DNA from: Sminthopsis crassicaudata
Taxonomy: Eukaryota
Direction: 5' to 3'
Assembly: GCF_048593235.1 (NCBI RefSeq)
Contig: NC_133619.1
Location: forward strand, 642,608,558 to 642,672,557
Length of the DNA: 64,000 nucleotides
The position numbers and the translations under genes were made by a program. The notes below the pieces were generated by a model that saw nothing but the letters and a program-made list of their open reading frames with translations, was not told the origin of the DNA and ran no database searches. Positions 10,276 to 60,440 of the stretch are shown here, one piece after another. The first letter of the stretch is position 1; each line of letters starts with the position of its first letter.

Positions 10276-11184
10276 CAAGCTCAATGTGGAGAGCAGTGAT
10301 CTGGCAGGAGTCTGTCTGCAGAAAGCTCTGAAGACAAGGAGAGGTCCTGTGCGCTCTGGAGTGGAAGGAGATGAGATCCCTCCGGTTCTGTCATCCTCAG
10401 ACCTTATCCACGGGTGCCACATTTCAGAAGGAATATCAAAGAGTTAGAAAAAGACACCCTGGAGGGTAAAGGGACATCATCAGTGAAGCTACTTGGCAGA
10501 CTCAACCTGGGGAAGAGAACTGGGGGCTAGGGCAAGGGAGGATGCTAAGTAAGTAGCTCTGGAGAGCAGAACCAGGAGCAGCAAGGGGAGGAAGCTTTAC
10601 AAGACCTTTCCAGCTGCCCCAGCATGGGATAAGGCTGTGTGGGGAAGAGAGGTTGTCCATAGGGATTATCCAGGAGAGATCAGAGGACCACCATGTGGCT
10701 CACAGAGGGAGACCCTTCTGGAGTCGGTTACACTGGATGGCCCCCAAGACTTCATTCATTCATCATCCAGCCTGAAACTGCAGGACAGCTTCCTGGAGGA
10801 CCTTTGGCTGGCAGGTGCAGCAGAGGGCACATGTGAGTGTAAACCACACACCTCCTGGCTGCGGGTAATATCTGACCCTTAGTTTCTTCACTTGGAAGAT
10901 GAGGGGGTTGCACCTACTGGCCTAGGCAAGTTCCTGCCTCCCTAAGCTCCTACAGCTCTGGGTTTTTAGAATTCCGCATGAGTCGTGTGAGCAACCATGT
11001 AATGTGAGTCGGATTTGGGTTGGAACCTGGGGCTTTCTGATTCCTTTTCTGTAAATTGAGCATGGTGCCTGACATAGACCTCCGAGCTCCCTCCCACTTG
11101 GGTCAATCTGAATTTGAAATGACAAGGCCCAAGCTGGTTCACCATGCTCCCCAAATCACCCTGTAATCCTCACCCTACCCCTAC

Positions 11185-11243
11185 CCCTAAATGTCTCCCT
11201 AACTCTAACCCTAATCCTAACCCTAACCACCCTAACCCTAAAT
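11185..11243. repeat. Short degenerate telomere-like (CCCTAA)n tract
   Basis: CCCTAAATGTCTCCCTAACTCTAACCCTAATCCTAACCCTAACCACCCTAACCCTAAA. Confidence 0.7.
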
Positions 11244-11474
11244 ATAACTAGCACTATCCATCATTGATCCAGCTTCCTGTTAGCGGCCCCTCCCCCACTG
11301 CAGTCCCTCCTTCAGCCCCGAGTCTGCTCCGGGGAAAGCTCTGAGCTTCCAAGAGGAAGTCAGCTCTCCATTCCCCCCTCCCCTCCCCCGCCCGTTACCC
11401 ACAGGGAGCAGCCTTCCAGCCCCGCCTGAGCTGGCCGGGGCACACAGACCAGGTCAGACGGGTCTCACAGATGC

Positions 11475-12335
11475 CTACTCACACTCACACACTCACATTC
11501 ACACACATGCTCTCACATTCTCTCACACACACACACTCTCTCCTACACTCAGACACACACATACTCAAACTCAAGATACACTCTCATACACATACACACT
11601 TTCTCACACACACTCACATTCACACACACCCTCACACTTACACTCACAGTCACACACACTCACACCCTCCCAACACACTTACACACTTTCTCACACTCAC
11701 ATTCACATACACACATTTACACCCTCTCACACACACTTACTTTCTCACACTCAACTCACACACATTCCCTCGAACACACTCACACACACATTTACACACA
11801 CACACACTTATACTCTCACACATATTCACTTACACACACTCACATTTACACACTTATACTATCTTATACACTTTCTCACACACCCTCACACACTCACACA
11901 CTTCCTCACACTCACTTTCACACACATTCACATACACGCATTTACACCCTCTCACACACTCACACTTTCTCACACACTTACATTTACACACACACTTATA
12001 CTCACACACACACATTCCCTCGCACACACTCTCACATACTCACATTTACACACACATACTCTCACACACACGTTCACTCACACACTCACATTTACACACA
12101 CTCACACACACACTTCCTCACACTCACTCTCACACACACATTCACATACACGCATTTACACCCTCTCACACTCACACTTACTCTCATACTCTCACACACT
12201 CACATTTACACACACACTTATACTCTCACACACTTTCTCACACACACATTCCCTCGCACACACTCTTACACACTCACACTTATACTCGCTCTCTCACACA
12301 CTTTCTCACACTCACACCCACCCACCCACACCCAC
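11475..12335. repeat. Complex (CA)/(CT)-rich low-complexity repeat with internal duplications
   Basis: ACAC/CTCA-rich throughout. The block CACATTCCCTCG(A/C)ACACACTC recurs near 11762, 12012 and 12246. Confidence 0.95.
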
Positions 12336-14864: not shown

Positions 14865-16646
<1,782 letters not shown>

Positions 16647-21050: not shown

Positions 21051-21555
21051 ACCAGAGCCACAGTTTAGAAAGCTTTATGTTTCCATTACCTTTAGGCCCC
21101 TCCCCCGCGGGGCCACGCACTTTCCCTCCCTCCTCCCATGGCCCTGCGCCCCCTCCCCCGCGTGTCCGCGTCCTCTGCTGGTCCCCGCGTCCGGGACGAC
21201 TCCCCCCTCCGGGGCCGTTTGAGCCGCACTCCGGTTTTCTGGCCCGCGTTGGTAGCGCTCTTGCGTACGTCCCCCTGTCCCACAGGACCTGGGGAAGGGG
21301 GCCCAGGCCTAGCGCTGGGGAGTGGCCCCGCCTTTGGGAAGCTGCCTCTCTAACCCGAGAGAGACGTGCAGGGAAAGAGGAGCCGTCGGGCAGTGGGTGC
21401 TGGGCACCGGGAACGAAGAAGGTTACCGAATCCCGTTCGTCTTAATTAATGAATGGGGGGTGATGTTCCCTGGATGCCCCCGAGGAGCTCTCGCACCAGA
21501 GGGCCAGCGGGATCTTGGGGCTTATTCCAACCCGATGCTCTCTGCAGACGCTGGG

Positions 21556-21900
21556 GTTTTATTTATTTATTTATTTATGAAATATATGCCTGAGTAATTT
21601 TTCAACACTGATTCCTGCAAAACCTTCTGTTCCAAATTGTCCCCTCCTTCCCCCACCCTCTCCCCTAGATAGGAGGTAGTCCAGTACACTAAATATGTTA
21701 AAATATATGTCAAATCCAATGTATGTGTGCATATTTCTACAGTTATCTTGCACAAGAAAACAAAATGCAAGCAAACAAGAGCAAGGAGGGAGAGTGCTGT
21801 GTTGTGTCCACACTCACCTGGCACTGTCCTCTCGCTGGCTCTCTTCATTGCTGAATGATTGGAACTGGTTTGAATCAGCTCATTGTTGAAGAGAGCCAGA
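21556..21900 (-). mobile_element. Older L1 3'UTR fragment
   Basis: (TTTA)n tail on the + strand followed by marsupial-type L1 3'UTR-like sequence. A related fragment lies at about 26230-26640. Confidence 0.55.
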
Positions 21901-36874: not shown

Positions 36875-37095
36875 GCGCCCCGGGCTGCGGGGGACGGGCC
36901 CTGAGCAAAGGCCGGTGCATCTGGCCCTCTGAGGCCTCCGGTCACTTGGAGGGGGCAGTTGGGATGGAATGGGGGGGCAGCAGGCAGTCCAAGGGGTTAG
37001 GGAGCGGAGAGACGCCATCCTGGGACCAGAGTCAGCAGGGATGGAAGGGGCGCCAGGGCCCCGGGGAGGGATGGAGGGCAAGTGGGAGCTGGGGG
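36875..37095 (+). repeat. Diverged direct duplication, copy A (copy B at about 58070-58265)
   Basis: Shares CCTGAGCAAAGGCCGGTGCAT and an exact 42-mer, ACGCCATCCTGGGACCAGAGTCAGCAGGGATGGAAGGGGCGC (37012-37053 = 58181-58222). Confidence 0.9.
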
Positions 37096-38446: not shown

Positions 38447-41400
38447 ATGGGGAGCAGCGCGTTCTTGTTGGCCAGCTACCTGGAGGAGCTCACGGCCCAG
38501 GAGTTCAAGAAGTTCAAGCTGGCGGTGGCGGCGGGGGGGCTCCCCCGGGGCCGCCTGGAGAAGGCGGACCCCGCGGACCTGGCCGGGCTCCTGGTCACCC
38601 ACCACGGGGCCGGGGGCGCCTGGCGACTGGCCCTGCGGGCCTGGCGGCAGATGGGCCTGAGGCGGCTCTGGGAGCTGGCCAGGAAGGAGGCTGCGCCCCC
38701 AGGTAAGGCAGCCCCGCCCTCGGGGAGGGACCGCCCCGCCCCCAGGCAAGGCAGCCCCGCCCTCGGGGAGGGACGGGCGCGCCGCCCCCAGGCAAAGCTG
38801 CCCCGCCCTCGGGGAGGGACCGCACCGCCCCAGGTAAGGCAGCCCCGCCCTCGGGGAGGGACCGCCCTGCCCCCAAGCAAACTGCTCCTCCCTCAGGGAG
38901 GGACGGGCGCCCTGCCCCAGGTAAGGCAGCCCCGCCCTCAGGGAGGGATGGGCGCGCGGTCCCCAGGCAAAAATGCCCCGCCCCAGGTAAGGCAGCCCCG
39001 CCCTCTGGGAGGGACCGCCCCGCCCAGCCAGTCGGGCCCACTCCTGGGCTGCCGCTGGGGGCTGGGCTGAGGTTTCCTGGGAGAGAAGTGAAAAATGGAA
39101 AGGGTTAACATCCTAAACCCGGGTGGGGGGGGGGGGGTGGGGGGGGTGGGGGGGGGGGCAACGGTTTTGTCAACTCTGGGAGACAGGCAGGAATGGGGGG
39201 AGGGGTGGGGAGCACCACGAGGGAACCTGCCCACTTTCCAGACTTTGGGACCCTGAGGGGGAGGAGCACCCCAGGCTGGAATACTTGGGGAGGAGGGGTG
39301 GGAGCACCCCAGGCTGGAACCCCTCCCAAGAAGGGGGCGAGGCCCTGTCTCCAGGTTGTTGAGCATCCTGCCCTGGAGCTGGTGCTGGGTGGAGGGGGCT
39401 GTCAAAGGCTGGGGGGGATCAGAGCAGCCCTGTCTGAGGCAGCTCCACCTTGGGGGTCAGTTATCCATGGAACAGAAGATCCCAGACAGGTGGAAGGGCT
39501 GGCGGGAGGGGCGTGGGAGCCCCCAGCCTTCCTCCAGGGAACACAGGAATACAGGCCTGGAAAGGGGACGGGGCTGCCCTCGGAGCCCCAGAGTCTGGTC
39601 CCAGAGCCCCTGGGGCGGGAGGTCAGGGTCCCAGCACAAGCCGCTTGGCTTCAGGCCTGGGCCCGGAGGCTGGCATTCCACACCCCTGGGAGCCTGGAGT
39701 CTAGAAGCCTGGCTTACCCTGCCCCGGGTGTCCCCTGCCTCAGAGCCCCCCTGCCCCGGGTCTCCCCTACCTGAGTCCCCCCACATGGGGGTCATCATGA
39801 TCCCAGGGTAGGATTCTGTGGGGGTTGGGGGCTCAGTTACTGAAGGGAGGGTGTTTGCCGTCCCCGAGTCAGGAGCCAGCCGCCCACCCGCTTCACCCGG
39901 GAGCTGTGGGGCCCAGACCCGGCTGAGGACCCTTGGAAGGAAGGCAGGACCAGGGAGGCTTCCCACGCTGGCCAGCCGGGTGACCCTGGGCACGTCCGCT
40001 CAGCTCCATCCGCCTCTCGGCTCAGTGCCGGGCGCTGGGCGGGCAAGCGGGGGGAGAGGGGTGGCCGAGGCCGGGGCCACCCCCAGCCTGCCGGACCTCC
40101 AGCCTGTCTCCCCCCTCCCCCTGTCCCCTCTGTCTCAGATGCTGCTGAGGCCCTCGGTGGGGACAGATCACAGTCGGGGGACGAGGCGTCTCCAAGGACA
40201 GAAGAGCCAGGTGAGTCTGTGCCTTGGGGGGCTCCAAGGGTCCAGGTGGAACAGTAGGGAGCCCTAAGCTGGGTATGGATCCCGGCAGCACCTGTGACCT
40301 CCCAGGCACGTTCTCCCCCTGCCCGGCTCCTCCACTCAGCCTCAGGTGAGAGCTGGGCAGAAGGAGCCAGCACGGGGCCTCCATGGCCTCCAGGGCTTCC
40401 TGCACTTCCGGGGCCTCCACAGCCTTATTTATGGGAATCTTGAACATGAAACAGAAAACATGAAAATAGGTGAATTTTGAAGAATATTCCATTACCAGCT
40501 TATCTTCCCTCTCTGCCCAGGACTAGTCCCCTAACTCCCTTCAGAAATGAACCAAGGGGCCTCTGCAAGGGAGAAGGATAGCACGATGCCTTCCAGGGGC
40601 CCAGGAGACAAGGATGGCAGCCAGGCCAGGGATCTGGGCTGGAAAGGCTGGGGAGTGTAGAGGGACGGAACTCTGGACAAGTGTGCTTGCAACAAGGGGT
40701 TAAGTCAGTGGAACTGATGTGATCATGGTTCTCTAGTTCATATATATCTAGTATGAAATAACGATATAGTCTCTCTCATCTGACATAACAATACAGTCAC
40801 TCTAATCTGATATAAAGGTACAGTCACTCTAATCTAATATAACGATACAGTCACTCTAGTCTGACATAATGGTACAGTCACTCTACTCTGATATAACGGT
40901 ACAGTCACTCTAATCTGATATTACGTTAGAGTCATTCTAGTCTGATATAATGGTACAGTCACTCTAGTCTGATATAGTGATACCGTCATTCTCATCTGAC
41001 ATAATGATATAGTCACTCTAGTCTGATATAACGATACAGTCACTCTAGTCTGATATAACGATACAGTCACTTTAATCTGATATAACGATACAATCACTCT
41101 AATCTGATATTATGTTAGAGTCATTCTAGTCTGATATAATGGTACAGTCACTCTAGTCTGATATAGTGATACCGTCATTCTCATCTGACATAATGATATA
41201 GTCACTCTAGTCTGATATAACGATACAGTCACTCTAATCTGATATAACGATACAGTCACTCTAGTCTGACACAATGATACAGTCACTCTCGTCTGATATA
41301 ATGGTACAGTCACTCTAATCTGATATTACGTTACAGTCATTCTAGTCTGATATAATGGTACAGTCACTCTAGTCTGATATAGTGATACCGTTATTCTCAT

Positions 41401-44400
41401 CTGACATAATGATACAGTCACTCTAATCTGACATAATGATACAATCACTCTAGTCTGATATAATGATACAGTCACTCTAGTCTGATATAAGGGTACAGTC
41501 ACTCTAGTCTGATATAACGATACAGTCACTCTAATCTGACATAATGATACAGTCACTCTAGTCTGATATAACGATACAGTCACTCTAGTCTGATATAATA
41601 ATACAGTCACTCTACTCTGATATAACGGTACAGTCACTCTAATCTGATATTACGTTAGAGTCATTCTAGTCTGATATAATGGTACAGTCACTCTAGTCTG
41701 ATATAGTGATACCGTCATTCTCATCTGACATAATGATACAGTCACTCTAGTCTGATATAACGATACAGTCACTCTAATCTGATATAACGATACAGTCACT
41801 CTAGTCTGACACAATGATACAGTCACTCTCGTCTGATATAACGGTACAGTCACTCTAATCTGATATTACATTACAGTCATTCTAGTCTGATATAATGGTA
41901 CAGTCACTCTAGTCTGATATAGTGATACCGTTATTCTCATCTGACATAATGATACAGTCACTCTAATCTGACATAATGATACAATCACTCTAGTCTGATA
42001 TAATGATACAGTCACTCTAGTCTGATATAACGGTACAGTCACTCTAGTCTGATATAACGATACAATCACTCTAATCTGATATAACGATACAGTCACTCTA
42101 GTCTGACATAATGATACAGTCACTCTAGTCTGACATAACGATACAGTCACTCTAGTCTGATATAACGATACAGTCACTCTAGTCTGATATAACGATACAG
42201 TCACTCTAATCTGACATAACGATACAGTCACTCTAATCTGACATAATGATACAGTCACTCTAGTCTGACATAATGATACAGTCACTCTAGTCTGATATAA
42301 TGATACAGTCACTCTAGTCTGATATAACGGTACAGTCACTCTAGTCTGATATAACGGTACAGTCACTCTAATCTGATATAACGATACAGTCACTCTAGTC
42401 TGACATAATGATACAGTCACTCTAGTCTGATATAATGGTACAGTCACTCTAATCTGATATAATGATTTACTCACTCTAGATTGGCTTATATGCTGTAATG
42501 ATGTAATTGTACTAGGGGATTTAAGGGCTGAAAGAACTGGGGACAGGTCTGTCAGTAAGAATGAATAGACAGTGAGGGAGACCATAAAGACACTAGATTC
42601 TATTCCTGACCATCCTCGTGGTATTTATCCTGCTGAGACCAAGGCCTGTCCGAAGGATCTCCAGAAAGGTAGCCCGGATATTATAGGTAATCAGCTTTAA
42701 CCCATTTCCCTGAGAAAGGCCTTGTTGTTTCCTAACCAGCAGCCATCTTTCTTTTACAAGAAGATATTCTGAGGATTCTGGACAGGGTTTTAGAGGCCAG
42801 AAAAATGTCATTTCCTCAGCTTTCTGTTTTTTTGAAAAGAAGAGGTCCTAAACGGGCTCCTACATTCCCCTATCACTCTTCTTTCCAGCTCCCCTGTTGG
42901 CCCATCACTCGTCTGACTCCTGTGTTCCTCCATCACTTTTCTTTTTGGCTCCTGCATTCGCCCATCACTCTTCCTTCCATCTCTCACGTTTGTTCATCAC
43001 TCTTCCTTCCCGCTCCTGTGTTCGCCCATCACTCTTCCTTCTGGCTCCCGTGTTTGCCCAGCACTCTTCCTTCCGTGTCTCTGATGGGCCTGTTGCTCTC
43101 TGGGTCCTGCCTCCCTTTGGGTTTCCTTACCTTAGTGTCTGGGCTGAAGCGCACCACTGGCTGTGCTCTCTTAGCATGGTCCTTGCACTGCTCAAGACAA
43201 GGTGTGTCCAGGAGAGATCTGCTGGGAAGTGGGCTTGACCAGACCCACGGCACCTGCCTTATTCTTTTTTTTCTCTCTTGGGGTTTTTTTCTCATCTTTC
43301 TTTTCCTTTGAACTTCTGTTCCCAGTGCTTTCTTCTCCATTTCCCCCCCCCCCCGGAGTCTTTATTTTAATTTTATTCTCTCTTGTTTAATTCATTGTGA
43401 GATGAGACTCATTTTAGAAGCATAGGATTTTGCGGCTATTCTGATTAGAGGAACCCGCGGCCCGGGGAGTTCAGCGCAACGCCACTATGGTGTCAGAAGC
43501 CTAGAGTTTGAATCACAGCTTCGAGTGGCTCGGGTCGACCTCTTCCTCTCTCTGTGACTCAGTGTCTACAAAATGGGGTGTTCTCACCCCTCTAGCTTTA
43601 TGTTTGAAGATTCAATTATTACAACTCCCAGCTTTTTTTTTCTTTTGGGGTCCTAAGGTTCAGTGAAGCAGGCGGGGAGGTCCAGGGGGTCAAAGCTGCG
43701 GGATGAGGGCCCCCCAGGAAGGGGGCAGGGAAGGTCCTCCAAACCCTTCATGATGGCCCAGCCCCCCCCCAGAATCACCTGCCTGGGAAATGGCGAAATA
43801 GGGGGGCTTGGCTGGCCAGACCGGCCCACTCATTCTTCCTGCCTTCAAATCAGGTCATGCGGAAAAGTACCGGGCCCGGGTGAAGAAGAAATTCCAGGTC
43901 CTGGAGGAGAGGAACGCACGCCTGGGTGAATGGGTCAACCTGAGCCAGCACTACACACGGCTACTGCTAGTGAAGGGCCACGCCAGTCCTTGGCACCGAG
44001 AGAAGGAGCTGTTGGCCTCTGGAGGGCTGCACGGCCTCCTCAGGGAGGAGCACCGAAGGCCCATCGAGCTGGAGACTCTCTTTGATGCCGATATGGGGGA
44101 GGCGGGCAGCCCCATCACCACCGTGGTGCTGCAGGGGGTGGCCGGCATTGGCAAGACCACCCTGGCCCGGAAGGTGCTGCTGGACTGGGCCGCGGGCACT
44201 CTCTACCCCGGCCGCTTTGACTACGTTTTCTATGTCAACTGCCGGACCGTGGAGGTGCTGGCCCCCCTGAGCGTGGCCGAGCTGCTGTCAGGGTGGCTGG
44301 AAGCCACAGGCCCAGGCTCCGGGCCTGCCCCGGTGCCAGCCCTGCTGGCCCGGCCCGAACGCCTGCTCTTTGTCTTTGATGGCTTTGATGAGCTTCTGTG

Positions 44401-50400: not shown

Positions 50401-53197
50401 TCCAAGTCTTGTTTCTTTTCCTGGGGCCTGGTTAGCTTTAACAGAGGCCTATCTCTCTCCTTGGTTCCAAGAGCTTAAGCTGCCTTCTCGGGCTTGTGAA
50501 TCTCCTTGACTGAATCCTAGCTGAGGCTCTGAGAGCTTCCAGTGTACTTGTGCTCTCTGGCTCTGAGAGCTTGTGGCTTATATGCTGTACACTGAGAAGA
50601 CACCAATCATTATATCACAAGGAAACCATTATTTGTTGTAGGATGAAATCGATGGTAAACTAGATTTAACCATTGTCTCCTCAATTCCACTCAGTACTTT
50701 GTTTCAAGTTCTGGCCTATAACATCTTCTTGTAGGGTCAGATCAACCATACTGAACCATGCTAAATGAGATTACTATTGTCTCTATCCATTCCACTGACT
50801 TAGTCCCTTGTAAGAATCAGAACACTTGCCTTCCCCCACTTTTGGCCATCTTTCGGCCTCCCTCTGCATTTCCTAATTTCTTTGTTTCTCAGGCCCCATT
50901 GGGGAGAAGGTTGCAGCAGTCGAATGGCCTATTTTGTAGCCTTCACCTTCTTGGCTTCTCCTCCGGCAGGGTGAGGAGCAGGATTTCAGGGGATTTCCTC
51001 TGGGGTGTCAGGTCTTTGCACTGAGCACCATGGGCCCCTCCAGCCTCTGTTGATGAATGGGGCCAGCTTGCAGCCTCCATTGCAGTCACTTAATTGTATT
51101 TTATTTTTTTTTCCATTGCCATATCAATAGTTTTCACCATTCACTTTTCTAAGATTTTGACTTCCATTTTTTCTTCCTCCTTCCTCCCCAGGCAGCAAGC
51201 AATCTGACACAGGTTATACATGTAGAAGCGCACTTAAACATTTCCACCTGTAGAACCATATGTAAACATGTTTGAACAAAGAATCAGCAAAGGGGAAAAG
51301 CACAAGCATGGCCCCCCTCTCCCCCTGCCAAGTGAAGAGAGTCTGTTCAATCTGTGATCAGATCCTGGAAGGCTTTCTCTGGGTATGGATTGTATTTTCC
51401 ATCACCAGTCTTTTGGAATTGTCTGGAATCACTGTGTTGCTGAGAGGAACTAAATCTATCGGAGACGGTCACTGCACAATGTGGATGTTGTTGCATTCAG
51501 TGTCCTCCTGATTCTCACTTCCTCAGCATCAGGTCCTGTAGGTCTCTCTGAAATCATCCCACTGGTCACTTGTAGAACAATAATGTTCCCTAACCTTCAT
51601 GTCCGATACCTTGCTCAGCCATCCTCCAGCTGATGGGCGTCCCCTCAGTTTCCATTTCTTTGCCACTACAAAAATGGCTGCTAGAGATATTTTTGCACAT
51701 GGGTCTTTTTTCCTTTTTGATGATGTCTTTGGGATAGAGACCCAGTGGAAATACAGTTGCATCCACAGCTTTACAGCCTTCTGGGTATAGTTCTAAATTT
51801 CTCTTTAGAATGATAGGATCAATTCATAACTCCACCACCAAGGCATTAGTATTCCAATTTTCCCATGTCCCCTTCAGCATTTATCATTTCCTTTTCTGGC
51901 ATATTAGCTGACTGATAGGTGTGAGATGTGAAATGATAGCTTTAACTCTTCATCTGCAAACTACTTCCTGTAACTGACTCAACTTTCCCCCTAAGAATTT
52001 GGATGCTGTACCACTTGGTGCACACATGGTTAGTAGTGATATCGCTACATTGTCTATGAACTTTTAGAAAGATGTAGCTTCTTTCCTTATCTCTTTTAAT
52101 TCGATCTATTTTTCTTTTTGCCTTGTGTAAGATCAGGTTTGCTACCCTTCTTTTTCATTTCAGCTGGAGCAGCCTTTTACCTTTATAATGATTGTTATAA
52201 ACATTTTATAGGATTCTCTTTTTTAATTCATTCTGCCATCTGCTTTCACTTTATGGGAGAGTTCAGCCCATTCACATTCATTATTACACCCCTTCCCTTC
52301 CACCCAACATGATGGAAGGGGGAGAGATGCTATTATCTTGGGGATTTGATAGGACTCTGAGACCCAGAAGTGGGGCTGGCTCCTGGATGTCCCCTTGCTG
52401 GGAAGGGATCTGAGGTTAGGGGTCCCCAGTCTCTGAGCTGGGCGTTCCAGTCCTGTCCCACATCCTTCTTAGGGTTAGAAGGCTTCACCAAGAACAGGAG
52501 TCTGCTGGCCTGGGAAGGGCAGGGCAGGAGCGGACACAGGGTTTGGGACAGGTAGCAGAGACCTTGGGGTTCGAGGGTGTCCCTTCAGGCCCCAGCAATC
52601 CCCTTCTAACGGGAGCCCCTTCCCGTCCTGCTCTGTGCACAGCTGGACACTCCCCCTTTCCCCATCTCAGCCCAAGGTCTTCCTCACAGCCCCTATTTGT
52701 CCCCCTCCTGCATGTCTCTCCCTCTGTCTCTCCCCACCCTGCAGGGTCCAGATGTGCGGGCTCACTGGGCTGGGCTGTGAGACACTGGCCTTGGTGCTGA
52801 GCAGCTGCCCCAGCCTGAGGCAGCTGGACCTCAGTGACAGCCGCGTGGGGAAGGAAGGCGCCAAGCTGCTGGGCCGGGCCCTGCTTCAGCCAGGCTGTCG
52901 GCTGCAGAGCCTCAGGTGTGTGACTGGGCAGCAGTGGGACCCCTCTCAGGCCGGCTCTGGATCTCGACAGGTTGTTCCGGGCAGCCTGCTGGGGGGCAGT
53001 ATGGGGCTCCAGAGGGAGAGGGTGGGGGCTGGAGCCCCTCTGAGTCCCACGCTCTGGATCTCGGCAGGTTGTTCCGGACAGCCCTGAGTGAGGCTGACAA
53101 GGCCGAGCTGGCAGCCGTGGCCAGAGCTAAGCCTGGCCTGGAGATCTCCTACCTGAGTGACAACAGGATCGGGTTATACCTTTTGGGGGCCCCTTGA
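38447..53197 (+). CDS. NLR family pyrin-domain protein (PYD-FISNA-NACHT-LRR; NLRP12/NLRP3-like), about 1055 aa, intact
   Basis: Exons: 38447-38702 (PYD: LASYLEEL..EFKKFKL), 40139-40210 (72 nt, phase 1-1), 43854-45708 (FISNA EERNARLGEWVNLSQHYTRLLLVK; Walker A GVAGIGKTT; Walker B LLFVFDGFDEL; FHSTFQEFF; first LRR pair). Five 171-nt phase-2 LRR exons follow: 46177-46347, 48169-48339, 48913-49083, 49266-49436, 52745-52915. Last exon 53068-53197. Total 3168 nt, all GT-AG, no stops. FISNA is closer to recalled NLRP12 than NLRP3, but orthology is not established. Confidence 0.95.
38690..39020 (+). repeat. About 43-bp GC-rich VNTR containing copies of the PYD-exon splice donor
   Basis: Unit CCCCAGGTAAGGCAGCCCCGCCCTCGGGGAGGGAC(C/G)GC..., about 7-8 copies. 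CAG|GTAAGG occurs after 38702, 38833, 38920 and 38986. Confidence 0.93.
40688..42685 (+). mobile_element. Putative solo LTR whose U3 region has expanded into a 27-bp satellite
   Basis: Starts TGCAACAAGGGGTTAAG. After the array come a GATTTAAG TATA-like box (about 42518), a CATAAAGAC polyA-like signal (about 42583) and an end ...CCCGGATATTATA (a mutated CA end is inferred). No TSD was found. Confidence 0.5.
40760..42470. repeat. AT-rich 27-bp tandem array (about 63 copies) with 540-bp higher-order periodicity, in NLRP intron 2
   Basis: Unit TGATATAACGATACAGTCACTCTAGTC. A variant marker block starts near 40917, 41106, 41322, 41646 and 41862. Confidence 0.97.
42855..43075. repeat. About 31-bp tandem repeat (about 7 copies)
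   Basis: Unit GCTCCTGTGTTCGCCCATCACTCTTCCTTCC and variants. Confidence 0.8.
46915..47125. repeat. 27-bp tandem repeat (about 7-8 diverged copies) inside an L2-like fragment
   Basis: Unit GAGATGCTGCAGAGGTGAAATGGACCA, related to the reverse complement of the 22470-22672 unit. Confidence 0.85.
49975..50275. repeat. CT-rich about 60-bp tandem repeat (4-5 copies)
   Basis: CTCCCTTGCCCTCATCTCTCTTTTGCCTTTCTCCCCCCTCTTTCACCTTCTTTCT recurs. Confidence 0.9.
50292..50723 (-). mobile_element. Putative solo LTR (about 430 bp), antisense in the NLRP intron before exon 52745
   Basis: The minus strand starts TGTTATAGG, has a CATATAAG TATA-like box (about 50580) and AATAAA (about 50390), and ends ...CCCATTACG. 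GGCTTATATGCTGTA is shared with the 42483 region. Confidence 0.6.
51085..52320 (-). mobile_element. Decayed L1 fragments (3'UTR and ORF2 end)
   Basis: Minus translation CAKISLAAIFVVAKKWKLRGRPSAGGWLSK matches the L1 ORF2 C-terminus (CTxMFIAALFxIAKxWKQPxCPSxxxW). Confidence 0.8.
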
Positions 53198-54399
53198 TCT
53201 GGGGAGTAGGAGCAGCAAAAGGCAGTCCTGAAGGGGACCCTGCCCACCGCCCCCACCACCGGATCTCAGAACCCTTGGCTGCCCACTCCATCTCTACAGG
53301 AACTTTGGCTCCCTGGTGCCTGCCCCATAAAACACAATGGCCAGGTCAGCGTTAGGACGGGGGAGCATTAGAACCTGACCCGCTGGGTCTCTGCATCGCT
53401 GGACAAGAACCGCCAGCATCGCGGACTCTGTGGAGGAGCCTGGCCCACAGAAGGCCCTGCCCCCTCCTCCCCCCCCCCCCCCCCCCCCGCACTTCTTAGC
53501 AGAGGTGGGGGTCGCTGTGTGGAAGCCCCAGATTTTTTTCAATCATTGATCTCCTTGCCGAAGTGTTTTCTGCTGTTTTCACAAGTTCTTTCCAATAAGG
53601 GGCGCTTCTCTGGGTGTGGCCGACGGAACCCCAAGATGGCGACGTGATCGTTTCTGGAGAGAAGGCAGTAGATGGAAGTGGGGCCCGAGGCGGGCAGCGG
53701 GGAAGGGACTCTGCCAGGGTCACTCAGCTTGCTCTGGAAACAAGTGCCAGGAGCTGAAGGGACTTTGAGCTCAAGGGAGGAGGGGCTTGCCGAAGGGCCG
53801 GGGCTCTGTGCAGCCCTCCCCTCAGTCCTCCACCCCTGGCAGCAGGGAGGGGTACAGAAGCTGCTTCCGGGCAGTCCTCCTGGCTTCTCCAAGTGGCCCC
53901 AGGACATCGGGGCACCGCCTCCCCCAGAGCAGGGAGAGAGGTGTGTGAGGGCCCCGCCTCAGGCTTCTGGGGATGGGGCAGGGGACTGTGAGTTCCCAGC
54001 TCCCGAAGGCCCTGGAGCGTCTGGGTAGGATTTCAGCGAGGGGGGGCCGTGCAGGGTCCTTCCCGCCCCCACCCCCACCCTCTGGGGCAGGGGCCAGAAG
54101 CAGAGTCTCCGGGTGAGCAGGGCCCTCGAACTAGGGAGGGGGGCCTCCTTTCTATTCCATTTGCAGCGCTTAGCCCGGGGAAGGCCCGAGGTGCGGTGGC
54201 CAGGGAGGCTCCTCTCCTGCTGCGGCCTCAAGAGGCCGGGGCTCCTGGGAAAAGCCCCCGAGGTCGGGAAGGCGGGTCCGGCCTGAAGGGCCCAGCGCCA
54301 CAGCTGGGGGGGAGGGGGGTCCGGCCGGGCCCACAGCTCGGGGGGCCTCAGGCAGGGGCCACTGGGGTGGGGCTTGGGAGTCCGGCGCGCCCTGCCCTA

Positions 54400-54520
54400 G
54401 CCTGGGGGACGCGGCGGGGTGGGGCGGGGCGGGGAGCAGAGCTGGTGAGGGTGGGGGCGGACCCGCGCCCCAGTTCAGACCGGCGCCTCTTCCCTGTAGT
54501 CTTCCAGGCTTCCTGTCCAG
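54400..54520 (+). promoter_or_regulatory. GC-box promoter and non-coding first exon of the TRIM-like unit
   Basis: Tandem GGGGCGGGGCGGGG at about 54421 in a CpG-rich region. Perfect donor CAG|GTGAGT after 54520. The next strong acceptor is TTTCCCACAG at 56159. Confidence 0.55.
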
Positions 54521-55419
54521 GTGAGTCCGCCGCATAGTGGCTGGGTGCCTGCCCCGGGCCCGGGGCCCTGCCTGGGCAAGACCAGTAGAACTTGGGCCCG
54601 CGGGAGCCGGAGCCCGCCCCTCTACCTGGGGCCGGTGGGGGGGTGGGGGGGGTGAGAAGGGGGGGCTGGGAGGGCCCAGACTCTTGCAAGCATTTCATGC
54701 GCAAGGCCCAGATCCGGGAAGGGCTTGTCCAGGGCTTAGGCAAGGACCCAGTCTCTAGGGCTCTTTCCACCCCTTGGTCTAAAGCTCTGAGGTTAGGTGA
54801 CTGGCGCGATCCTAAGTCAGCCAGCATTTATTAGGCACTTACTGTGTGCCATGAAGTTGAGCTAAGCACTGGTACAAGAAGGAATTGGGAATGCACGCCC
54901 TGGCCTCCAGGTGCTTGAGCTCTAATGGGAGAGATAAAAATACTAATTCTTCCGCGCAAATGGCCTTAGTGGGATGGGATTAACTGGAGCCTCTCCTAGG
55001 GCTGGGCCCCGGCGAAAGAGGTGAGGCTGAGGTTGGGGTTTCCCGGAAGCTAGAAAAGCCGGGCCTGAGGGACGCCGCGGAGAGGATTCCAGAGCAGACC
55101 CCAGACACCAGTGTTTCCCTGGGCAGGTAAGGCTGGTGGGGGCTGCCCAGGAAGGGCTTTGAACGCCAAGCACAGGGCCTTGCACTTGATCTTGAGACAA
55201 TAGAGTCACTGGAAGTTGTTAAGAGGTTGGGAGTCCGAAAAATCCGGAGGATGTAGCATGGTGGTACCTTCTAGAGTAATCGGGAAGGTAGAGGAGTGGG
55301 GAGGGCTTGGGGGAAAAAGAAGTTCTCTTGGACACTGAGGGTACGATGTCTACCAGACATGCAGAGGTCTGAAAAGCTGTTGGAGGTCACCAGAGAGACC
55401 ATCACAGCCCTTCTGTCCA

Positions 55420-55660
55420 TCCAACCTTCCCTCCATCCTTTTCATGCAGCCATCCATTTATCGATTCATTGATCCTGTCACCCATCCTGTCCTCCATCCT
55501 TCCATCTATCCACCCAGCTTTTCCTCATCCATCCTTCCTCTGATCCATTCATTCACCCATCTGCCCATCCTTCGATCCATCCATCCTTCCGTCCATCCAT
55601 GCAATCGCCCTTCCTCCCATCTTTCTGTCCCTCCTTCCTTCTGCCCATCCATCCCTGAGC
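55420..55660. repeat. (TCCA)n-like degenerate simple repeat
   Basis: CATCC/TTCC-rich tract. Confidence 0.8.
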
Positions 55661-56162
55661 TCAAACTTGGTCTAATACCAGCTCTTCCCTTCTACTGTGC
55701 TGCCACGCTGGCTCCTTCCACCTTCACAACAGCGCCTCCCCTGGATTCCCGGAGCTCCCCCCTCCCACTAGTCTTCCCGTTTCTCTCCGGTGAACTGGAT
55801 TTGGATGAGCTGTGCAAAGGTGTCAGGGGTAGGGTTAGAGTGGTGGAGAGGGGAGCAGTCAGGCCAGCGACAGGTCTATCTTGGCTGGGGACCCCTCTTC
55901 TAGGGGGAGAGTTCGCTGTGGGGGCCGAGCCAGGTGCCCTGGAGGCAAAGTGCAAAGTGGCCACTTTAGGGTTAGGCAGGGCTGGAGTCTGGCTGGCTTG
56001 GGTCTGCCCCAGTGCACTAGCTGGGGCTCCCTGCTCTGACCTCAGCCGCTCCGGTCCAAGACACGACTCTCCCAGAGCTCCCCTTCCCCCGTCCCTCTGG
56101 GGTCCCGCCTGCCAGTGGTGGGCCGACAAGCCCTACCCGGTCTCTTCATTTCCCACAGGACC

Positions 56163-56522
56163 ATGGACATGGCTCTGGTGATCCGGGCCTTGAAGAAGGA
56201 GCTCTTGTGTCCGATCTGCAAGCTCGTCTTGCTGGACCCGGTCACGAGCCCCTGCGGCCGCACCTGGTGCCGGGTCTGCTTCCCTGGGAAGGCCTCCAAG
56301 GAGCTGCCGACCAACCTGCGCCTGAAGAACGTGCTGTCCCTGCTGCTGCGCATGCAGCCCCAGCCGCCCGTGAGGTTTCCCCCGAACCACTGCGCCCTGC
56401 ACATGGAGCCCTTATTGTTCTTCTGCTGGCACGACTGGGAGCACGCGTGCATAGTGTGCAAATACTCCGAGGAGCACCGGAGGCACACGCTGATCCCATT
56501 CCGGTCCCAGAGCCTCGAGTGA
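56163..56522 (+). CDS. TRIM-derived ORF, 119 aa: truncated RING plus intact B-box type 2 (microprotein or pseudogene exon)
   Basis: Kozak ACCATGG just after an acceptor. RING CPIC-x11-CGR-TWCRVC has His changed to Arg and lacks the last Cys pair. B-box CALH-x7-CWHD-x4-CIVC-x5-HRRH is complete. TGA stop, then AATAAA at 56745-56750. It is flanked by an exact 48-bp direct repeat. Confidence 0.7.
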   Translation: MDMALVIRALKKELLCPICKLVLLDPVTSPCGRTWCRVCFPGKASKELPTNLRLKNVLSLLLRMQPQPPVRFPPNHCALHMEPLLFFCWHDWEHACIVCKYSEEHRRHTLIPFRSQSLE

Positions 56523-58069
56523 GTGAGCGTGGGACAGCCTCCCAGCCTTTGCCCATCGCCGGTGCTGGGGCGTGGGAGAGGCGCTGCATTGGCCCCCACT
56601 GTGCCTCGATCAGCCTCCGCGCCTTTGGCATGTTCCTGTATTTGCTCCCTGTCCTCCCAAAGAGTGGCCTGCTGTGGGGGCCGAGCCAGGTGCCCTGGAG
56701 GCAAAGTGCAAAGTGGCCTGGGCCTGGATGGATGGATGTGCAATAATAAATAACAGCACCATTTGTATACTGCCTTAGCCGGCTGGCCCAGCGCTGAGTT
56801 CTTCTCTCTCTGATCCTCACAACCACCTTAGGAAGGTGCTGTCGGGATCCCCATTTTACAAAGAGAAAACTGAGGCCGCATTTGAGCTCCCGTTTTCCTG
56901 CCTCTCCAGTAGCTCCGCGCTCTGGAGCGGCCCCTAGCGGCCAAGAACCCTGCACCGAGGCCTAAGTCTCGGTGGGAGGGGCGAGGGAGGTGAGAGATGG
57001 AAAAAGAGGCTAGGGGCGGCTCTTTGGCGTACTTTTGCGCCTGCGCTCGGTGCTCCTTTGCCTGCTGGGAGATGTAGTTCGGAGCGGGATGCGCTGCTGC
57101 GTTCGGCCGGGCTGGAGCGAGTGGAATATGGTGGGGGTGAAGGGAGGAGCTTCTTCGTAGGCCCGCCCCCGTGACGTTATTTCCCCCGGCCGTACCTGAG
57201 ACGCTCCCCGCGGATGGGGTCAGCGTGGGAGCCCCAGCCCCACTCCCCCTACTCTCTCGTTCCCCTTCCCAGGCGCGCAATCTTCCTTCCGAAACCTCTG
57301 ATCCTTTGCCCAGGAAGGAGCCCGCCCTCCCTGCCCTTATTCTTCGACACGCAGAGGAGGGAGGTGGCGCTGCTGTGCCTCCGACGGGCCTTGGCGGGGG
57401 TCTCCGGGAGCACTCCTCCTAGGGGGACGCCCGCGTTGGGGGAGGGGGCGGGAGAGGCTGTATCTGTCCGGCATCCTCTGGGGTCAGCTCTAGTAGCCGA
57501 GTGTGGGAGGGGGGGCTGACCGGGGCACTCCTCTCCCCACTTAGGCTGGCCCTGAGCCGGGAGTGGCAGGGGCTGGGGGTGGGGGTTGAGGGGATCTGGG
57601 ACTCAGACCTGAGGTCACAGTGGCCGTGATCCTTTGGGCCATATTGCTGGGATTGTGGGTAGGAGCCGGACCCTTGCCTGGAGCAGGGTCCGAATGTCAG
57701 AATCCCCTTGGTGAGGCTCTTGGAGGAGGCAGGGCCCAGCCCCCGCAGCCCCCGTGTAGGCATGCTCCCCCAAATCAGCCCCCTTCTTACTCCGCGGGTC
57801 TTTGCGGAGCTCTCCGTCCTCGTGGTGTCTGCCCTCCCTCCATACCGGTGCCCTGCCCCCACCCATGGCCAGAGCCGGCCGCCACCGATCCTGGAGCGGG
57901 TCTTTGGGAGCCCACCTTCCTGGAGGACTTTAGGGACACGAGGGGGAGTCCCGAGACAGTGGGGGGCGCCAGGAGGAGGAGCGGAGGGGATGATGATCTG
58001 GAGGCAAGTCCAGCCGGGAAGACCGAGGAGTGGGGAGTGGGACGGGGGTCCCCAAGCCCGGAGAGAGGA

Positions 58070-58265
58070 GCGCCCCGGGCTGTAAGCGGGGGCCTGAGCA
58101 AAGGCCGGTGCATGTGGCCCTCCGAGGTCACCGGAGGAGGCACATGGGATGGAATGGGGGATTAGGAAGGGAGCGGAGACACGCCATCCTGGGACCAGAG
58201 TCAGCAGGGATGGAAGGGGCGCTAGGGCCCAGGCAGGGACTGAACGCAAGCGGGAGCTGGGGGGT
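58070..58265 (+). repeat. Diverged direct duplication, copy B (copy A at about 36875-37095)
   Basis: See copy A. Exact 42-mer at 58181-58222. Confidence 0.9.
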
Positions 58266-58599
58266 GGCTTTCCCCACATGTTTAGGCCATAACTCACCCA
58301 AATGATCACTAAGGGTAGGAGAGAAATTAATGGAACCACAAGTCGGGGCTCTGCCTTATCCAAGGAGGGGAGGGGATGCACAGAAGGCTGGGAGCAGAGC
58401 ATGCAGTAGGTGCTTAATCAGGCCTAGAGTGGGGGTGGGGCCTGGGTAGGAAAGAAAGGGGCTCCTATGTCCTGGGTCAGTCCACTGGGGAGATGAGGGG
58501 CCTCGCTGGCCACTGTCCACGCCCTGCATCGCCCCGGTTACTATGGAGACCAGAGCCTGCAGCCCGCCCACTCCACACTGCCTCATCCGCGCCGGCCAT

Positions 58600-58900
58600 C
58601 CTCTGGCAGGACTCCATTTCCCAGCAGGCCTCAGAGTCACCCGGAAAGTGATGTCACTCAGTAAGATAGTGGGGGAGGGTCAAGCGGCCTCTTGTGCGTA
58701 AGAGCGGGTCCGAGGAATCTTGGGAGTCGTAGTCCGAGCCTCCTGCACGCAGGCGCAGTGCGTTGGGAGTCTGGCGCTGTCCGCTTTGTCCAGCTCGGGG
58801 CTGGCAGGGGGTGAGTCCTGCCCCGCACCGCGGGGCGGATGGCCGTGGGAGGTGGAAAATGAGGGCTTGGGGGTCACCTTACTAGCGTCCCGGCGGCCCC
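58600..58900. promoter_or_regulatory. CpG promoter-like element
   Basis: CCGGAAAGTG at 58641-58650 overlapping TGATGTCA at 58649-58656. Plus donor CA|GTAAGA after 58660. Minus donor at about 58883. A similar CpG island with TGACGT lies at about 57000-57450. Confidence 0.45.
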
Positions 58901-60039
58901 CCCCTGCCCCCGTCTGCTGAGAAACGGAGTGCCGGGTGCCTGTAGCCCCCTCCCCATCTCCTTCCCCCAGCCGCAAAACCCTCCTCTTAGTCTTTCGTCC
59001 CCCCAAAGCCGGTGCCTGCACATAGTAGGGGCCTCATAGATGCTTGTTCTCTATCTCTTAGCTCCTGGTTAGACCGGGAGCACCTGGAAGCCGGGACTGC
59101 CCGGTGCCATTCCCTGCAGAGAGGCAGAAGAAAGGGAGGGAACATGCCATTGTGAAGCACCTACTATGTGCCGAGCACTGTGCCGACTGCTTGAATTCTA
59201 TTCCCCCACGTCTCTGGGATGGAAGGGCAATTTTGATCCCCATTTTACAGATGTGGAAACTGAGGCAGGCACACACCTAGTGTGCCTCTGACTCTGGATT
59301 TGAACTTAGGGCTTCTGGGCCCAGGGGAGCCCCTGCTTGTGGAGTGTAGGAGGTCCCCAAAGCCTGGCTGAAGCCATCCCTTCTCCCTTCTCCCCAGGCT
59401 TCTTCCTCCAGTATGGGGAGACTAGGGGAGCTCTTTCCTCCCCCTGGTGGTTCATATCTGGGCCTCTCAAGCTCCCTCTTTGTCTTTAGGCCTGGGTGCC
59501 ACGCCTCCTCCCACACCCCCTGCCCCCTACCCGGAGCCGGTGGCAAGCACTCGGACCCCTCGATCCTCTTCGACCTGCTGGCCTAACAGTATGTTTCCTC
59601 CCTTGTCTTTGGCGCAATGTTCTGAGTCTTTGAAGCCCCTTTGGGGGCCTGGGGAGGTCCGTCCCCGGGAGACTGCATACAGCCAGTGTTTCCTAAATGC
59701 TTAATGCTGTTCTAGTGGCTCCTCCCAGTTCCCCCTCCTGTCATCCTCTGTCTCTCCACAATCCATGGGCTGTGTCTGTGTCTTCAGGTTCCTGAAGGGC
59801 TCCAGGGCTGGAGGGTCCTTCTTGGGGGGCCCAAGCATTCATTCAGCATCTGTGGTGTGCTGGGGGCCCTATGCTACTGGTATAGGTAGGGCTTTGAATA
59901 GTGTGACTAGATGGGATGCTCCGTGGTTGGGGGAGGGAGGGGAAGGAGGAGGGCGTTTCAGGCTGGAGGCCAGGGGGGCCAGGGTGCAAAGCGTGGGGGG
60001 CTAGACGGGAACTGGGTTATCTGCCTGCTTCTGCCTGCT

Positions 60040-60440
60040 TCCCCCTGCTCGGCCACACCCCCATTGGGCACCTCCAGGAGGCGTCAGGAAAGGTTCCCTG
60101 GAGCCTGGAGGAGCTTGGACTGAGGGTTCCAGGAGCCCCCAGTGCCTTTGCTGGGGGGAGTGTGACATGTGTGCATTTGCTCTGGGGGAAGGGGTGGGGA
60201 AGGTTTCATTGGGAGGGTCCAGGACCCCAGGAGCATTGTGGGACACGACTGGGAGAGAGTGCCAGAGAAGGGGCTGGGAAACCAGTGGTGAACCTGAAGA
60301 GCCTGCTGGGAGTGAACTGAATGGAGCCATCTCAATTGGGTTGGGGGGTCTGGGAGTGTGGCCTGCTGGCAGTTTGGGATGGGCTGCTTGGAGGAGGGAT
60401 ACAGTAGGTGCATAATAATGCTCACAGGGTGAGTACCCCA
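60040..60440 (+). pseudogene. Possible decayed PRY/SPRY (B30.2) exon; a decayed SCAN exon is the alternative
   Basis: GRFHWEG...GESAREG has spacing like SPRY GRHYWEV...RESVRRKG. QEASG...LEEL and QEHC also weakly resemble SCAN. The signal is weak and ambiguous. Confidence 0.25.

Follow-up and report, generated by a model that had tools for sequence, protein, structure and literature searches.

A transcribed half-RING and B-box2 reading frame beside an NLRP3/12-like gene in the dunnart Sminthopsis crassicaudata: a putative member of a marsupial mini-TRIM family

In the fat-tailed dunnart Sminthopsis crassicaudata, a 64-kb stretch of DNA (hereafter the window) carries an NLRP3/12-like gene, a short transcribed unit that we call mini-TRIM and, further downstream, a minisatellite and a zinc-finger gene (Table 1). 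The unit contains an open reading frame (ORF; public record GCA_048593235.1) for a TRIM-derived protein, P0001. A preliminary description of this DNA, drawn from its letters alone, had seen here a two-exon gene for a dead RING and an intact B-box2, and nearly all of its landmarks were indeed in place: the GC boxes, the donor motif after base 54520, the ACCATGG start context (56160-56166), the ORF with its TGA, the AATAAA beyond it and a second donor motif overlapping the stop. From sequence comparison, we judge the predicted product to be a rapidly evolving mini-TRIM made of half a RING and a B-box2, not a B-box-only protein. The family to which it would belong, the RING lesion that its members share and their pattern of selection appear undescribed, with gene models of the relatives already present in RefSeq. 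The RefSeq names of these marsupial genes were not found in the searchable literature, and a literature search on TRIM, marsupials and B-box gave no match.

The B-box2 of P0001 is complete, as had been proposed. It passes the Pfam model zf-B_box (PF00643, 28.5 bits for a cut-off of 24.1), and its eight ligands are kept in the canonical spacing C-x2-H-x7-C-x2-D-x4-C-x2-C-x5-H-x2-H. The loss of the histidine ligand and of the last CxxC pair from the RING was also borne out: relative to the TRIM profile, a 17-residue gap covers loop 2 and the last CxxC, and CGR replaces CGH. Five of the eight RING ligands are left, short of a complete C3HC4 RING; the Pfam RING models scored 10.8-23.5 bits, all under their cut-offs, and the match was restricted to profile positions 1-26. 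The four cysteines of zinc site 1 (C16, C19, C36 and C39) were invariant in 30 aligned sequences. At 119 residues, and related to an interaction domain of larger proteins, P0001 has the size of a microProtein.

No other TRIM module was detected. The ORF stops 11 residues past the last B-box histidine, RNA continues into the stop, and the DNA downstream of the ORF gave no coiled-coil match to full-length TRIM queries. A hidden Markov model (HMM) built from 54 B30.2 domains gave no significant match when run against all six frames of the window; the best at the locus had an E value of 39. A SPRY remnant had been suggested at 60040-60440; that interval was blank in Pfam, as was 57590-58162, and the B30.2 HMM did not recover it either. 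A PRY/SPRY-like match at 57977-58150 (tblastn E 0.09) fell to E 8-39 with profile HMMs and was dropped.

The AlphaFold2 model, computed from a 30-sequence alignment, had a mean predicted local distance difference test score (pLDDT) of 82, with values of about 90 in both zinc modules and low confidence in the linker (65-75); helices were predicted at residues 3-13 and 52-64. In Foldseek the model matched the RING-B-box structure of TRIM21 (5OLM, E 4e-8). It aligned with the TRIM21 RING and its flanking helices at 2.1-2.5 A and also matched the RINGs of TRIM25, TRIM2 and TRIM69 together with their flanking helices, and its B-box2 superposed on that of TRIM5alpha at 0.8-1.0 A. Sequence matches in the PDB include the B-boxes of TRIM21, TRIM72, TRIM39 and TRIM5. 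In TRIM RINGs, the flanking helices form the dimer interface and zinc site 2 is required for the E2-binding fold. Because of this, it is a reasonable inference that ligase activity is lost and the capacity for TRIM-type contacts is retained.

RNA evidence came from Logan contigs of four runs from four studies (X5, X11, X13 and X18), mapped on 53001-59000. Such contigs are of low depth and carry no transcript ends, and their RNA status was deduced from splice joints: we took the four runs to be RNA-derived because all hold the last NLRP junction (52915/53068) in spliced form, the loose letters corresponding to 52883-52912. Within the unit, an X5 contig joined 54647-55126 to 56159-56718 in plus-strand orientation, skipping 1032 nucleotides (nt) bounded by GT and AG. 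Contigs of X18 and X13 that start at the acceptor carry loose letters identical to 55108-55123, and the junction 55126/56159 is supported in three runs from three studies. A further X13 contig covers 54702-55127. Contigs of the terminal exon, present in all four runs, begin at 56156 and end at 56504, 56639, 56669 or 56718; X11 has additional contigs at 56689-56844 and 56961-57122. The unit is thus transcribed and spliced, the acceptor proposed at 56159 is the one used in all four runs, and the exon that holds the ORF is terminal. The donor used is 55126, rather than 54520 as the proposed 54520-56160 junction had it: contigs of the four runs showed no use of 54520, and no run had a contig over 54218-54646. 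In all four runs, contigs continue through the stop and the old donor at 56518/56519, and none has a joint or a loose end at 56518.

Table 1. Features of the mini-TRIM unit and neighbouring genes (positions in the window, in nt unless given in kb).
Feature	Position	Strand	Remarks
Mini-TRIM unit	54.4-56.8 kb	+	between the NLRP gene and the minisatellite
GC-box block GGGGTGGGGCGGGGCGGGG, candidate promoter	54400-54440	+	GC boxes at about 54417-54435 in the sequence
Candidate first exon	54470-54520	+	ends in donor CAG/GTGAGT (54520/54521)
Upstream exon, RNA-supported	54647-55126	+	donor CAG/GTAAGG at 55126/55127; 54647 is a contig limit
Intron	55127-56158	+	1032 nt, GT..AG; RNA joint
Terminal exon with the whole coding sequence	56159-56770	+	acceptor AG/G; 3' end predicted from AATAAA
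Coding sequence, protein P0001	56163-56522	+	119 codons (56163-56519) and TGA (56520-56522)
RING remnant, residues 16-39	56208-56279	+	site 1 (C16, C19, C36, C39) intact; site 2 left with C31
B-box2, residues 77-108	56391-56486	+	ligands C77, H80, C88, D91, C96, C99, H105, H108
Relic splice donor GTGAGTGAGCG	56519-56529	+	GA/GTGAGT at 56518/56519; provides the stop codon
Exact 48-nt copy of intron segment 55915-55962	56671-56718	+	in the 3' untranslated region; polymorphic
AATAAA poly(A) signal	56745-56750	+	223 nt after the stop
NLRP3/12-like gene	PYD exon near 38.4 kb; NACHT exon 43.8-45.7 kb; LRR exons to 53 kb	+	
CTCF-motif minisatellite	61.2-61.7 kb		
C2H2 zinc-finger gene	from 62.4 kb	+	

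The NLRP gene was used as an anchor to locate orthologous loci. In the Tasmanian devil, a 121-codon ORF (P0286) lies downstream of the orthologous NLRP gene and shares 63% protein identity with that of the dunnart; the lesion recurs in it with the same CGR-TWC-R-x-C pattern, and its sequence is identical between two devil assemblies. In Antechinus flavipes the orthologue (P0287), likewise of 121 codons, lies in synteny downstream of the same NLRP gene and carries the same His-to-Arg change and deletion. The reading frame is open in both species. In RefSeq each of the two units is a protein-coding gene of its own, named "E3 ubiquitin-protein ligase TRIM4-like" (XP_031820010.1 and XP_051846401.1). 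The acceptor, the ACCATGG start, the relic donor and the AATAAA block are kept in the three dasyurids, the donor sequence GTGAGTGAGCG being identical in all of them. A 2-nt indel just 5' of this donor places it in phase 2 in the dunnart and in phase 1 in the devil and antechinus, and all three frames terminate within the donor motif despite the phase shift, which argues against a conserved downstream coding exon.

Upstream of the RNA-supported exon, the GC boxes and the candidate first-exon block (54470-54525, including the donor GT(G/A)AGT) are 82-90% identical among dunnart, devil and antechinus, compared with 20-50% in the flanks, and the segment 54350-54420 has an identity of 0.72-0.85 compared with 0.2-0.5 in its flanks. 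The GC-box block is a candidate promoter, and the unit may have a promoter of its own at 54400-54520. The GT of the donor at 55127 is kept in devil and antechinus, in poorly conserved surroundings. The intron that follows holds a (TCCA)n tract and a strongly conserved block at 55150-55400. The latter is 80-90% identical in the three dasyurids, above the ORF, is covered by contigs in X5, X11 and X18, and showed no Rfam match and no copy among the other loci examined; possible roles are those of an enhancer or an alternative exon. The (TCCA)n tract (55416-55652 in the window) has grown to about 2.3 kb in antechinus (locus L006, 6937-9300).

At the 3' end, the AATAAA at 56745 is the sole AATAAA or ATTAAA on the plus strand within 53000-59500; in our own reading of the sequence, it probably sits on the 5' edge of a MIR-like short interspersed element. 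The block that contains it, GGATGTGCAATAATAAATAA, is kept in all three dasyurids, 210-272 nt past their stops. The 48-nt copy of an intron segment in the 3' untranslated region (UTR) is present in the reference and in X5 and missing at that place in devil and antechinus. Contigs of X11 and X13 have instead a different, devil-like sequence of 14 nt after 56669. We considered a splice to a distant exon or an antisense acceptor for these loose ends, whose letters are not in the window, and rejected both; since the sequence meets the reference again at 56719 with its last five letters and resembles that of the devil at this place, we read it as an allele that lacks the copy. The copy is read as a structural polymorphism in dunnarts, probably a templated patch.

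To place the protein among TRIMs more widely, searches beyond the syntenic loci were made. A word search with the ORF gave no match beyond the ORF itself. An exhaustive HMMER search of 1.84 billion representatives returned 1161 TRIM-type matches (E <=0.001), nearly all of them longer proteins and none above about 40-49% identity; the best match outside the family was at about 40%. Three further representatives share the lesion, one from the dunnart and two from the koala. The dunnart paralogue P0036 (RefSeq "TRIM12A-like", XP_074141623.1) has 151 residues and two coding exons, stops within its own relic donor and lies on another chromosome, about 9 kb from a gene of the major histocompatibility complex (MHC) class I. 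At that locus (L007), the two stand at 10001-11788 and 21066-21788, with about 9 kb between them. The koala has two related genes (P0020 and P0045) with several isoforms of 141-218 residues, named "TRIM4-like" (XP_020859657.1 and others). The point at which these isoforms part is precisely the homologous exon end. One of them, like the dasyurid genes, continues through the donor; the residues added in koala isoforms number just 11-80, and no domain was detected in them. In the paralogous dunnart and koala proteins, C31 is replaced by serine, so that zinc site 2 is wholly gone.

Across the family, twelve ligands (the four cysteines of site 1 and the eight of the B-box) are invariant at an overall identity of 31-37%, as is the DPVT..G.T.C..C core. 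A maximum-likelihood tree of the six mini-TRIMs, with seven other TRIM N-termini as outgroups, grouped the six together (support 85/87) in two clades, one NLRP-linked (99/99) and one MHC-linked (96/96). The MHC-linked clade contains both dunnart and koala; the split of the clades and the RING lesion would therefore be older than the dasyurid-diprotodont divergence, barring a long-branch artefact. On this comparison of sequences, the lesion is ancestral to the entire family. In gene lists of possum, glider, wombat and opossum, the 10 kb on the downstream side of the NLRP orthologue hold no called gene apart from one of 671 residues in opossum, which is weak evidence. By blastn, no DNA-level homology was found between the ORF exon with its flanks and the loci of the paralogues (L005 and L007).

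Substitution rates by themselves look neutral. Between dunnart and devil, DNA identity is 80.3% in the ORF, 79.3% in the intron and 80.9% in the upstream exon; the synonymous rate (dS) is 0.20 and the nonsynonymous rate (dN) 0.24, a ratio (omega) of 1.19, and 22, 26 and 21 changes fall on the three codon positions. Amino-acid identity (74/117) matches the mean of 73 in neutral simulations. The first 351 nt of the ORF, on the other hand, contain no indel for 6.75 predicted from the intron rate (P 0.0012). When substitutions were placed at random at the observed density, 9-13% of trials produced no stop, 0.6-1.2% kept all eight B-box ligands and 0.03-0.07% kept all 13 zinc ligands (P 3-7e-4). 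The DPVTSPCGRTWCR stretch is unchanged in the protein, with synonymous changes only. Between dunnart and antechinus omega reaches 3.2, six of 62 changes being synonymous where 14.6 were expected (P 0.005), and between devil and antechinus it is 0.46. In the dunnart itself, the four runs contain a single ORF variant, the synonymous 56255 C>T (Cys31), and 13 variants in the flanking exon and UTR; at the flank density, the ORF should contain 6.4 (P 0.012), which, with low-depth contigs, is only suggestive of constraint.

By region, omega in dasyurids is 0.63 in the RING remnant, 4.6 in the linker and 1.24 in the B-box. The preliminary description had taken the contrast between a damaged RING and a perfect B-box2 for uneven decay and had proposed selection on a ligase-dead fragment reduced to its B-box. 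Selection on a short ligase-dead TRIM fragment agrees with the open orthologues and the 13 retained ligands; restriction to the B-box does not agree with the invariant cysteines of site 1. Nor is the decay ongoing: the damage looks like a single old lesion, because the core of the RING remnant is invariant family-wide and is more constrained than the B-box. A frozen zinc scaffold whose surfaces change at or above the neutral rate, that is, mixed purifying and diversifying selection, would fit these patterns better than a pseudogene does.

Taken together, we consider it somewhat better than an even chance (about 55%) that the unit is a genuine gene, transcribed and kept by evolution, that encodes the 119-residue TRIM-derived protein, with translation of the ORF predicted. 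Several observations weigh against this. The RNA-supported leader, of at least 484 nt with six upstream ATGs, is poor for translation. The ratio of dN to dS near 1, the even use of codon positions and an ORF no better conserved than the intron between dunnart and devil are what neutral drift would give, and the rate tests rest on three dasyurid sequences (dunnart, devil and antechinus). The protein is predicted from DNA and RNA contigs, and these contigs give neither strand nor expression level, their RNA status leaning on splice joints. No NLRP gene was found within 10 kb of the koala genes. Finally, neither AATAAA nor ATTAAA occurs between the stop of the dunnart NLRP gene (53195-53197) and 56745, so that the mini-TRIM exon could be the tail of NLRP transcripts.

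This last point opens an unlikely alternative, in which the exon is transcribed and untranslated: a TRIM exon relic would provide the neighbouring NLRP gene with a spliced terminal exon at its 3' end and with a poly(A) site, or lie in a non-coding read-through RNA, and its frame would be incidental. Besides the missing poly(A) signal, the unfavourable leader and the neutral-like dN/dS would suit it, and so would the distribution of contigs, those of the NLRP 3' UTR ending at 54190-54217 and the next beginning at 54647-54702. The gap between them (54218-54646) has 74-84% GC with G-runs, and such stretches are often lost by short reads. A use at the RNA level would not, however, shield ligand codons, reading frame and freedom from indels, and an intron 1.9 kb past the NLRP stop, far into the 3' UTR, would normally trigger nonsense-mediated decay. 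In the devil, moreover, a 5.2-kb insertion with its own AATAAA (locus L002, 24508-29736) splits the NLRP gene from the unit, and the ORF is still intact. This insertion and the conservation of the GC-box and of the 54470-54525 block in three species favour an independent mRNA, and RefSeq likewise lists the devil and antechinus units as genes of their own.

A slowly decaying pseudogene, left from the first coding exon of a dead TRIM and open in three dasyurids by luck, would account for the ORF substitution rate equal to that of the intron, the even codon positions, the identity at the simulated neutral mean and the 2-nt indel just before the stop. Yet an ORF free of stops and indels that also keeps 13 ligands would arise with a joint probability far below 1e-4, the same architecture is kept in a second old paralogous lineage in dunnart and koala, polymorphism in the ORF is low and the unit is transcribed and spliced. 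The overall dN/dS near 1 is the one pseudogene-like feature of the ORF, and we regard this explanation as improbable; the version put forward earlier, a TRIM pseudogene with a SPRY remnant, also founders on the lack of B30.2 in the window, the RNA that reads through the old donor and the differing donor phase. These last observations bear equally on the idea of a longer TRIM that has this exon as its first coding one, with GA/GTGAGT spliced to downstream coiled-coil and B30.2 exons. The perfect conservation of GTGAGTGAGCG and the use of the homologous donor in koala isoforms speak for it. Contigs in all four runs nevertheless pass the donor unspliced, neither a B30.2 nor a coiled-coil match was found in the 7.5 kb before the zinc-finger gene or elsewhere in the window, the phase of the donor differs between the dunnart and the two other dasyurids, and the koala isoforms gain only 11-80 residues with no domain found, making a longer TRIM very improbable indeed.

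If the unit is a maintained gene, P0001 would consist of an N-terminal helix, the first RING zinc site, a post-RING helix, a short linker and a complete B-box2, and would lack the second RING zinc site, a coiled coil and a B30.2 domain. The marsupial family has two lineages, one dasyurid and downstream of the NLRP3/12-like gene, the other near an MHC class I gene in the dunnart and present twice in the koala. The protein would be incapable of ubiquitin ligation alone and may bind other proteins through the assembly surfaces of its B-box2 or the dimerising helices that flank the RING. Such a "microprotein" might serve full-length TRIM or pyrin-like partners as an adaptor or a decoy, without catalysis of its own. 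The "ligase" of the RefSeq names, which are automatic, is unlikely to fit because a zinc site is missing.

The closest described analogue appears to be eutherian TRIM52, a partial duplicate of TRIM41 with RING and B-box2 only, which is under positive selection and has been repeatedly lost (Malfavon-Borja et al. 2013, PMC3845644). Like TRIM52, mini-TRIM would be a partial TRIM copy of the RING/B-box2 region, without coiled coil or B30.2 downstream, that evolves fast (dN/dS exceeds 1 at some TRIM52 sites) and is patchily retained. TRIM52 has all eight RING ligands and a loop 2 expanded to 139 residues, whereas in mini-TRIM loop 2 and the last CxxC are deleted, the histidine is lost and one zinc site is left. 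TRIM52 is eutherian and stems from TRIM41; the mini-TRIM family is marsupial and without a close parent, its best non-family identity being about 40%. Only single TRIM41-like genes were found in devil and opossum (PMC3845644), so the marsupial family would be independent of TRIM52. The nearest functional concept may be that of plant miP1a and miP1b, small, essentially B-box proteins that are related to larger multi-domain B-box proteins and proposed to bind them (Graeff et al. 2016, PMC4807768). Their B-boxes come from CONSTANS-like transcription factors and not from TRIMs, and mini-TRIM has half a RING in addition; for the plant proteins, unlike for the one proposed here, both partners and function are demonstrated. 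The best matches in sequence and fold are the TRIM21 RING-B-box (5OLM) and the TRIM5alpha B-box2 (5K3Q), with RING-flanking helices shared by the model; unlike mini-TRIM, these modules belong to full RBCC-B30.2 ligases with a two-zinc RING. In TRIM21 the B-box occupies the E2 site, and trimers of the TRIM5 B-box build lattices.

Other observations concern the surroundings of the unit. The NLRP intron 52916-53067 is spliced in RNA, which leads to the stop at 53195-53197 and a C-terminus of the NLRP3 type; the public gene call retains this intron, with its stop at 53087, and RefSeq marks the protein as "low quality". The NLRP intron that separates the PYD exon from the NACHT exon holds a large tandem array (40747-42479), built of units of about 27 nt or multiples of this length that are 84-92% similar; its devil counterpart is much shorter (L002, 12280-12694). 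Downstream of the unit, contigs of X5 cover 58039-58474; within this region, 58070-58263 resembles at 76% a segment (36875-37095) that precedes the NLRP PYD exon, and 58266-58891 is 87% identical to the devil. This region may be a duplicated promoter or 5' exon for the downstream zinc-finger gene. A piece of an X5 contig at 58168-58230 was considered as part of the mini-TRIM unit and rejected, its flanks mapping to 36971-37091 in the paralogous segment upstream of the NLRP gene. On the minus strand at 15400-15665, a very GC-rich open frame encodes a complete C3HC4 RING (CLIC...CGHVFCLEC...CPMC), unrelated to mini-TRIM and probably part of a small RING-finger gene. The window has a run of N at 9933-10162. 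Rfam gave no match on 53000-59000, and a scan for bacterial promoters and terminators, irrelevant to marsupial DNA, was blank.

A truncated TRIM is commonly set aside as a pseudogene or a dominant-negative splice form. In this case, a stand-alone one-zinc-RING gene would have persisted in two or more paralogous lineages from a time before dasyurids and diprotodonts separated. A broader proposal, which we hold to be doubtful, is that these one-zinc half-RING and B-box2 proteins form an undescribed marsupial family of decoys or adaptors in the innate immune response. In dasyurids, the copy would be linked to the NLRP3/12-like sensor both physically and in transcription and would modulate either that inflammasome or a pyrin/TRIM partner of it, its surface being under diversifying selection from pathogens or co-evolving partners. 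If translated, mini-TRIM would be a natural experiment on B-box2 and RING-flanking helices without ligase activity, and a marsupial counterpart of the independently arisen TRIM52 of eutherians. Its location beside an NLRP sensor, possibly in the same transcripts, would offer a testable link between a TRIM module and the inflammasome in a model marsupial.

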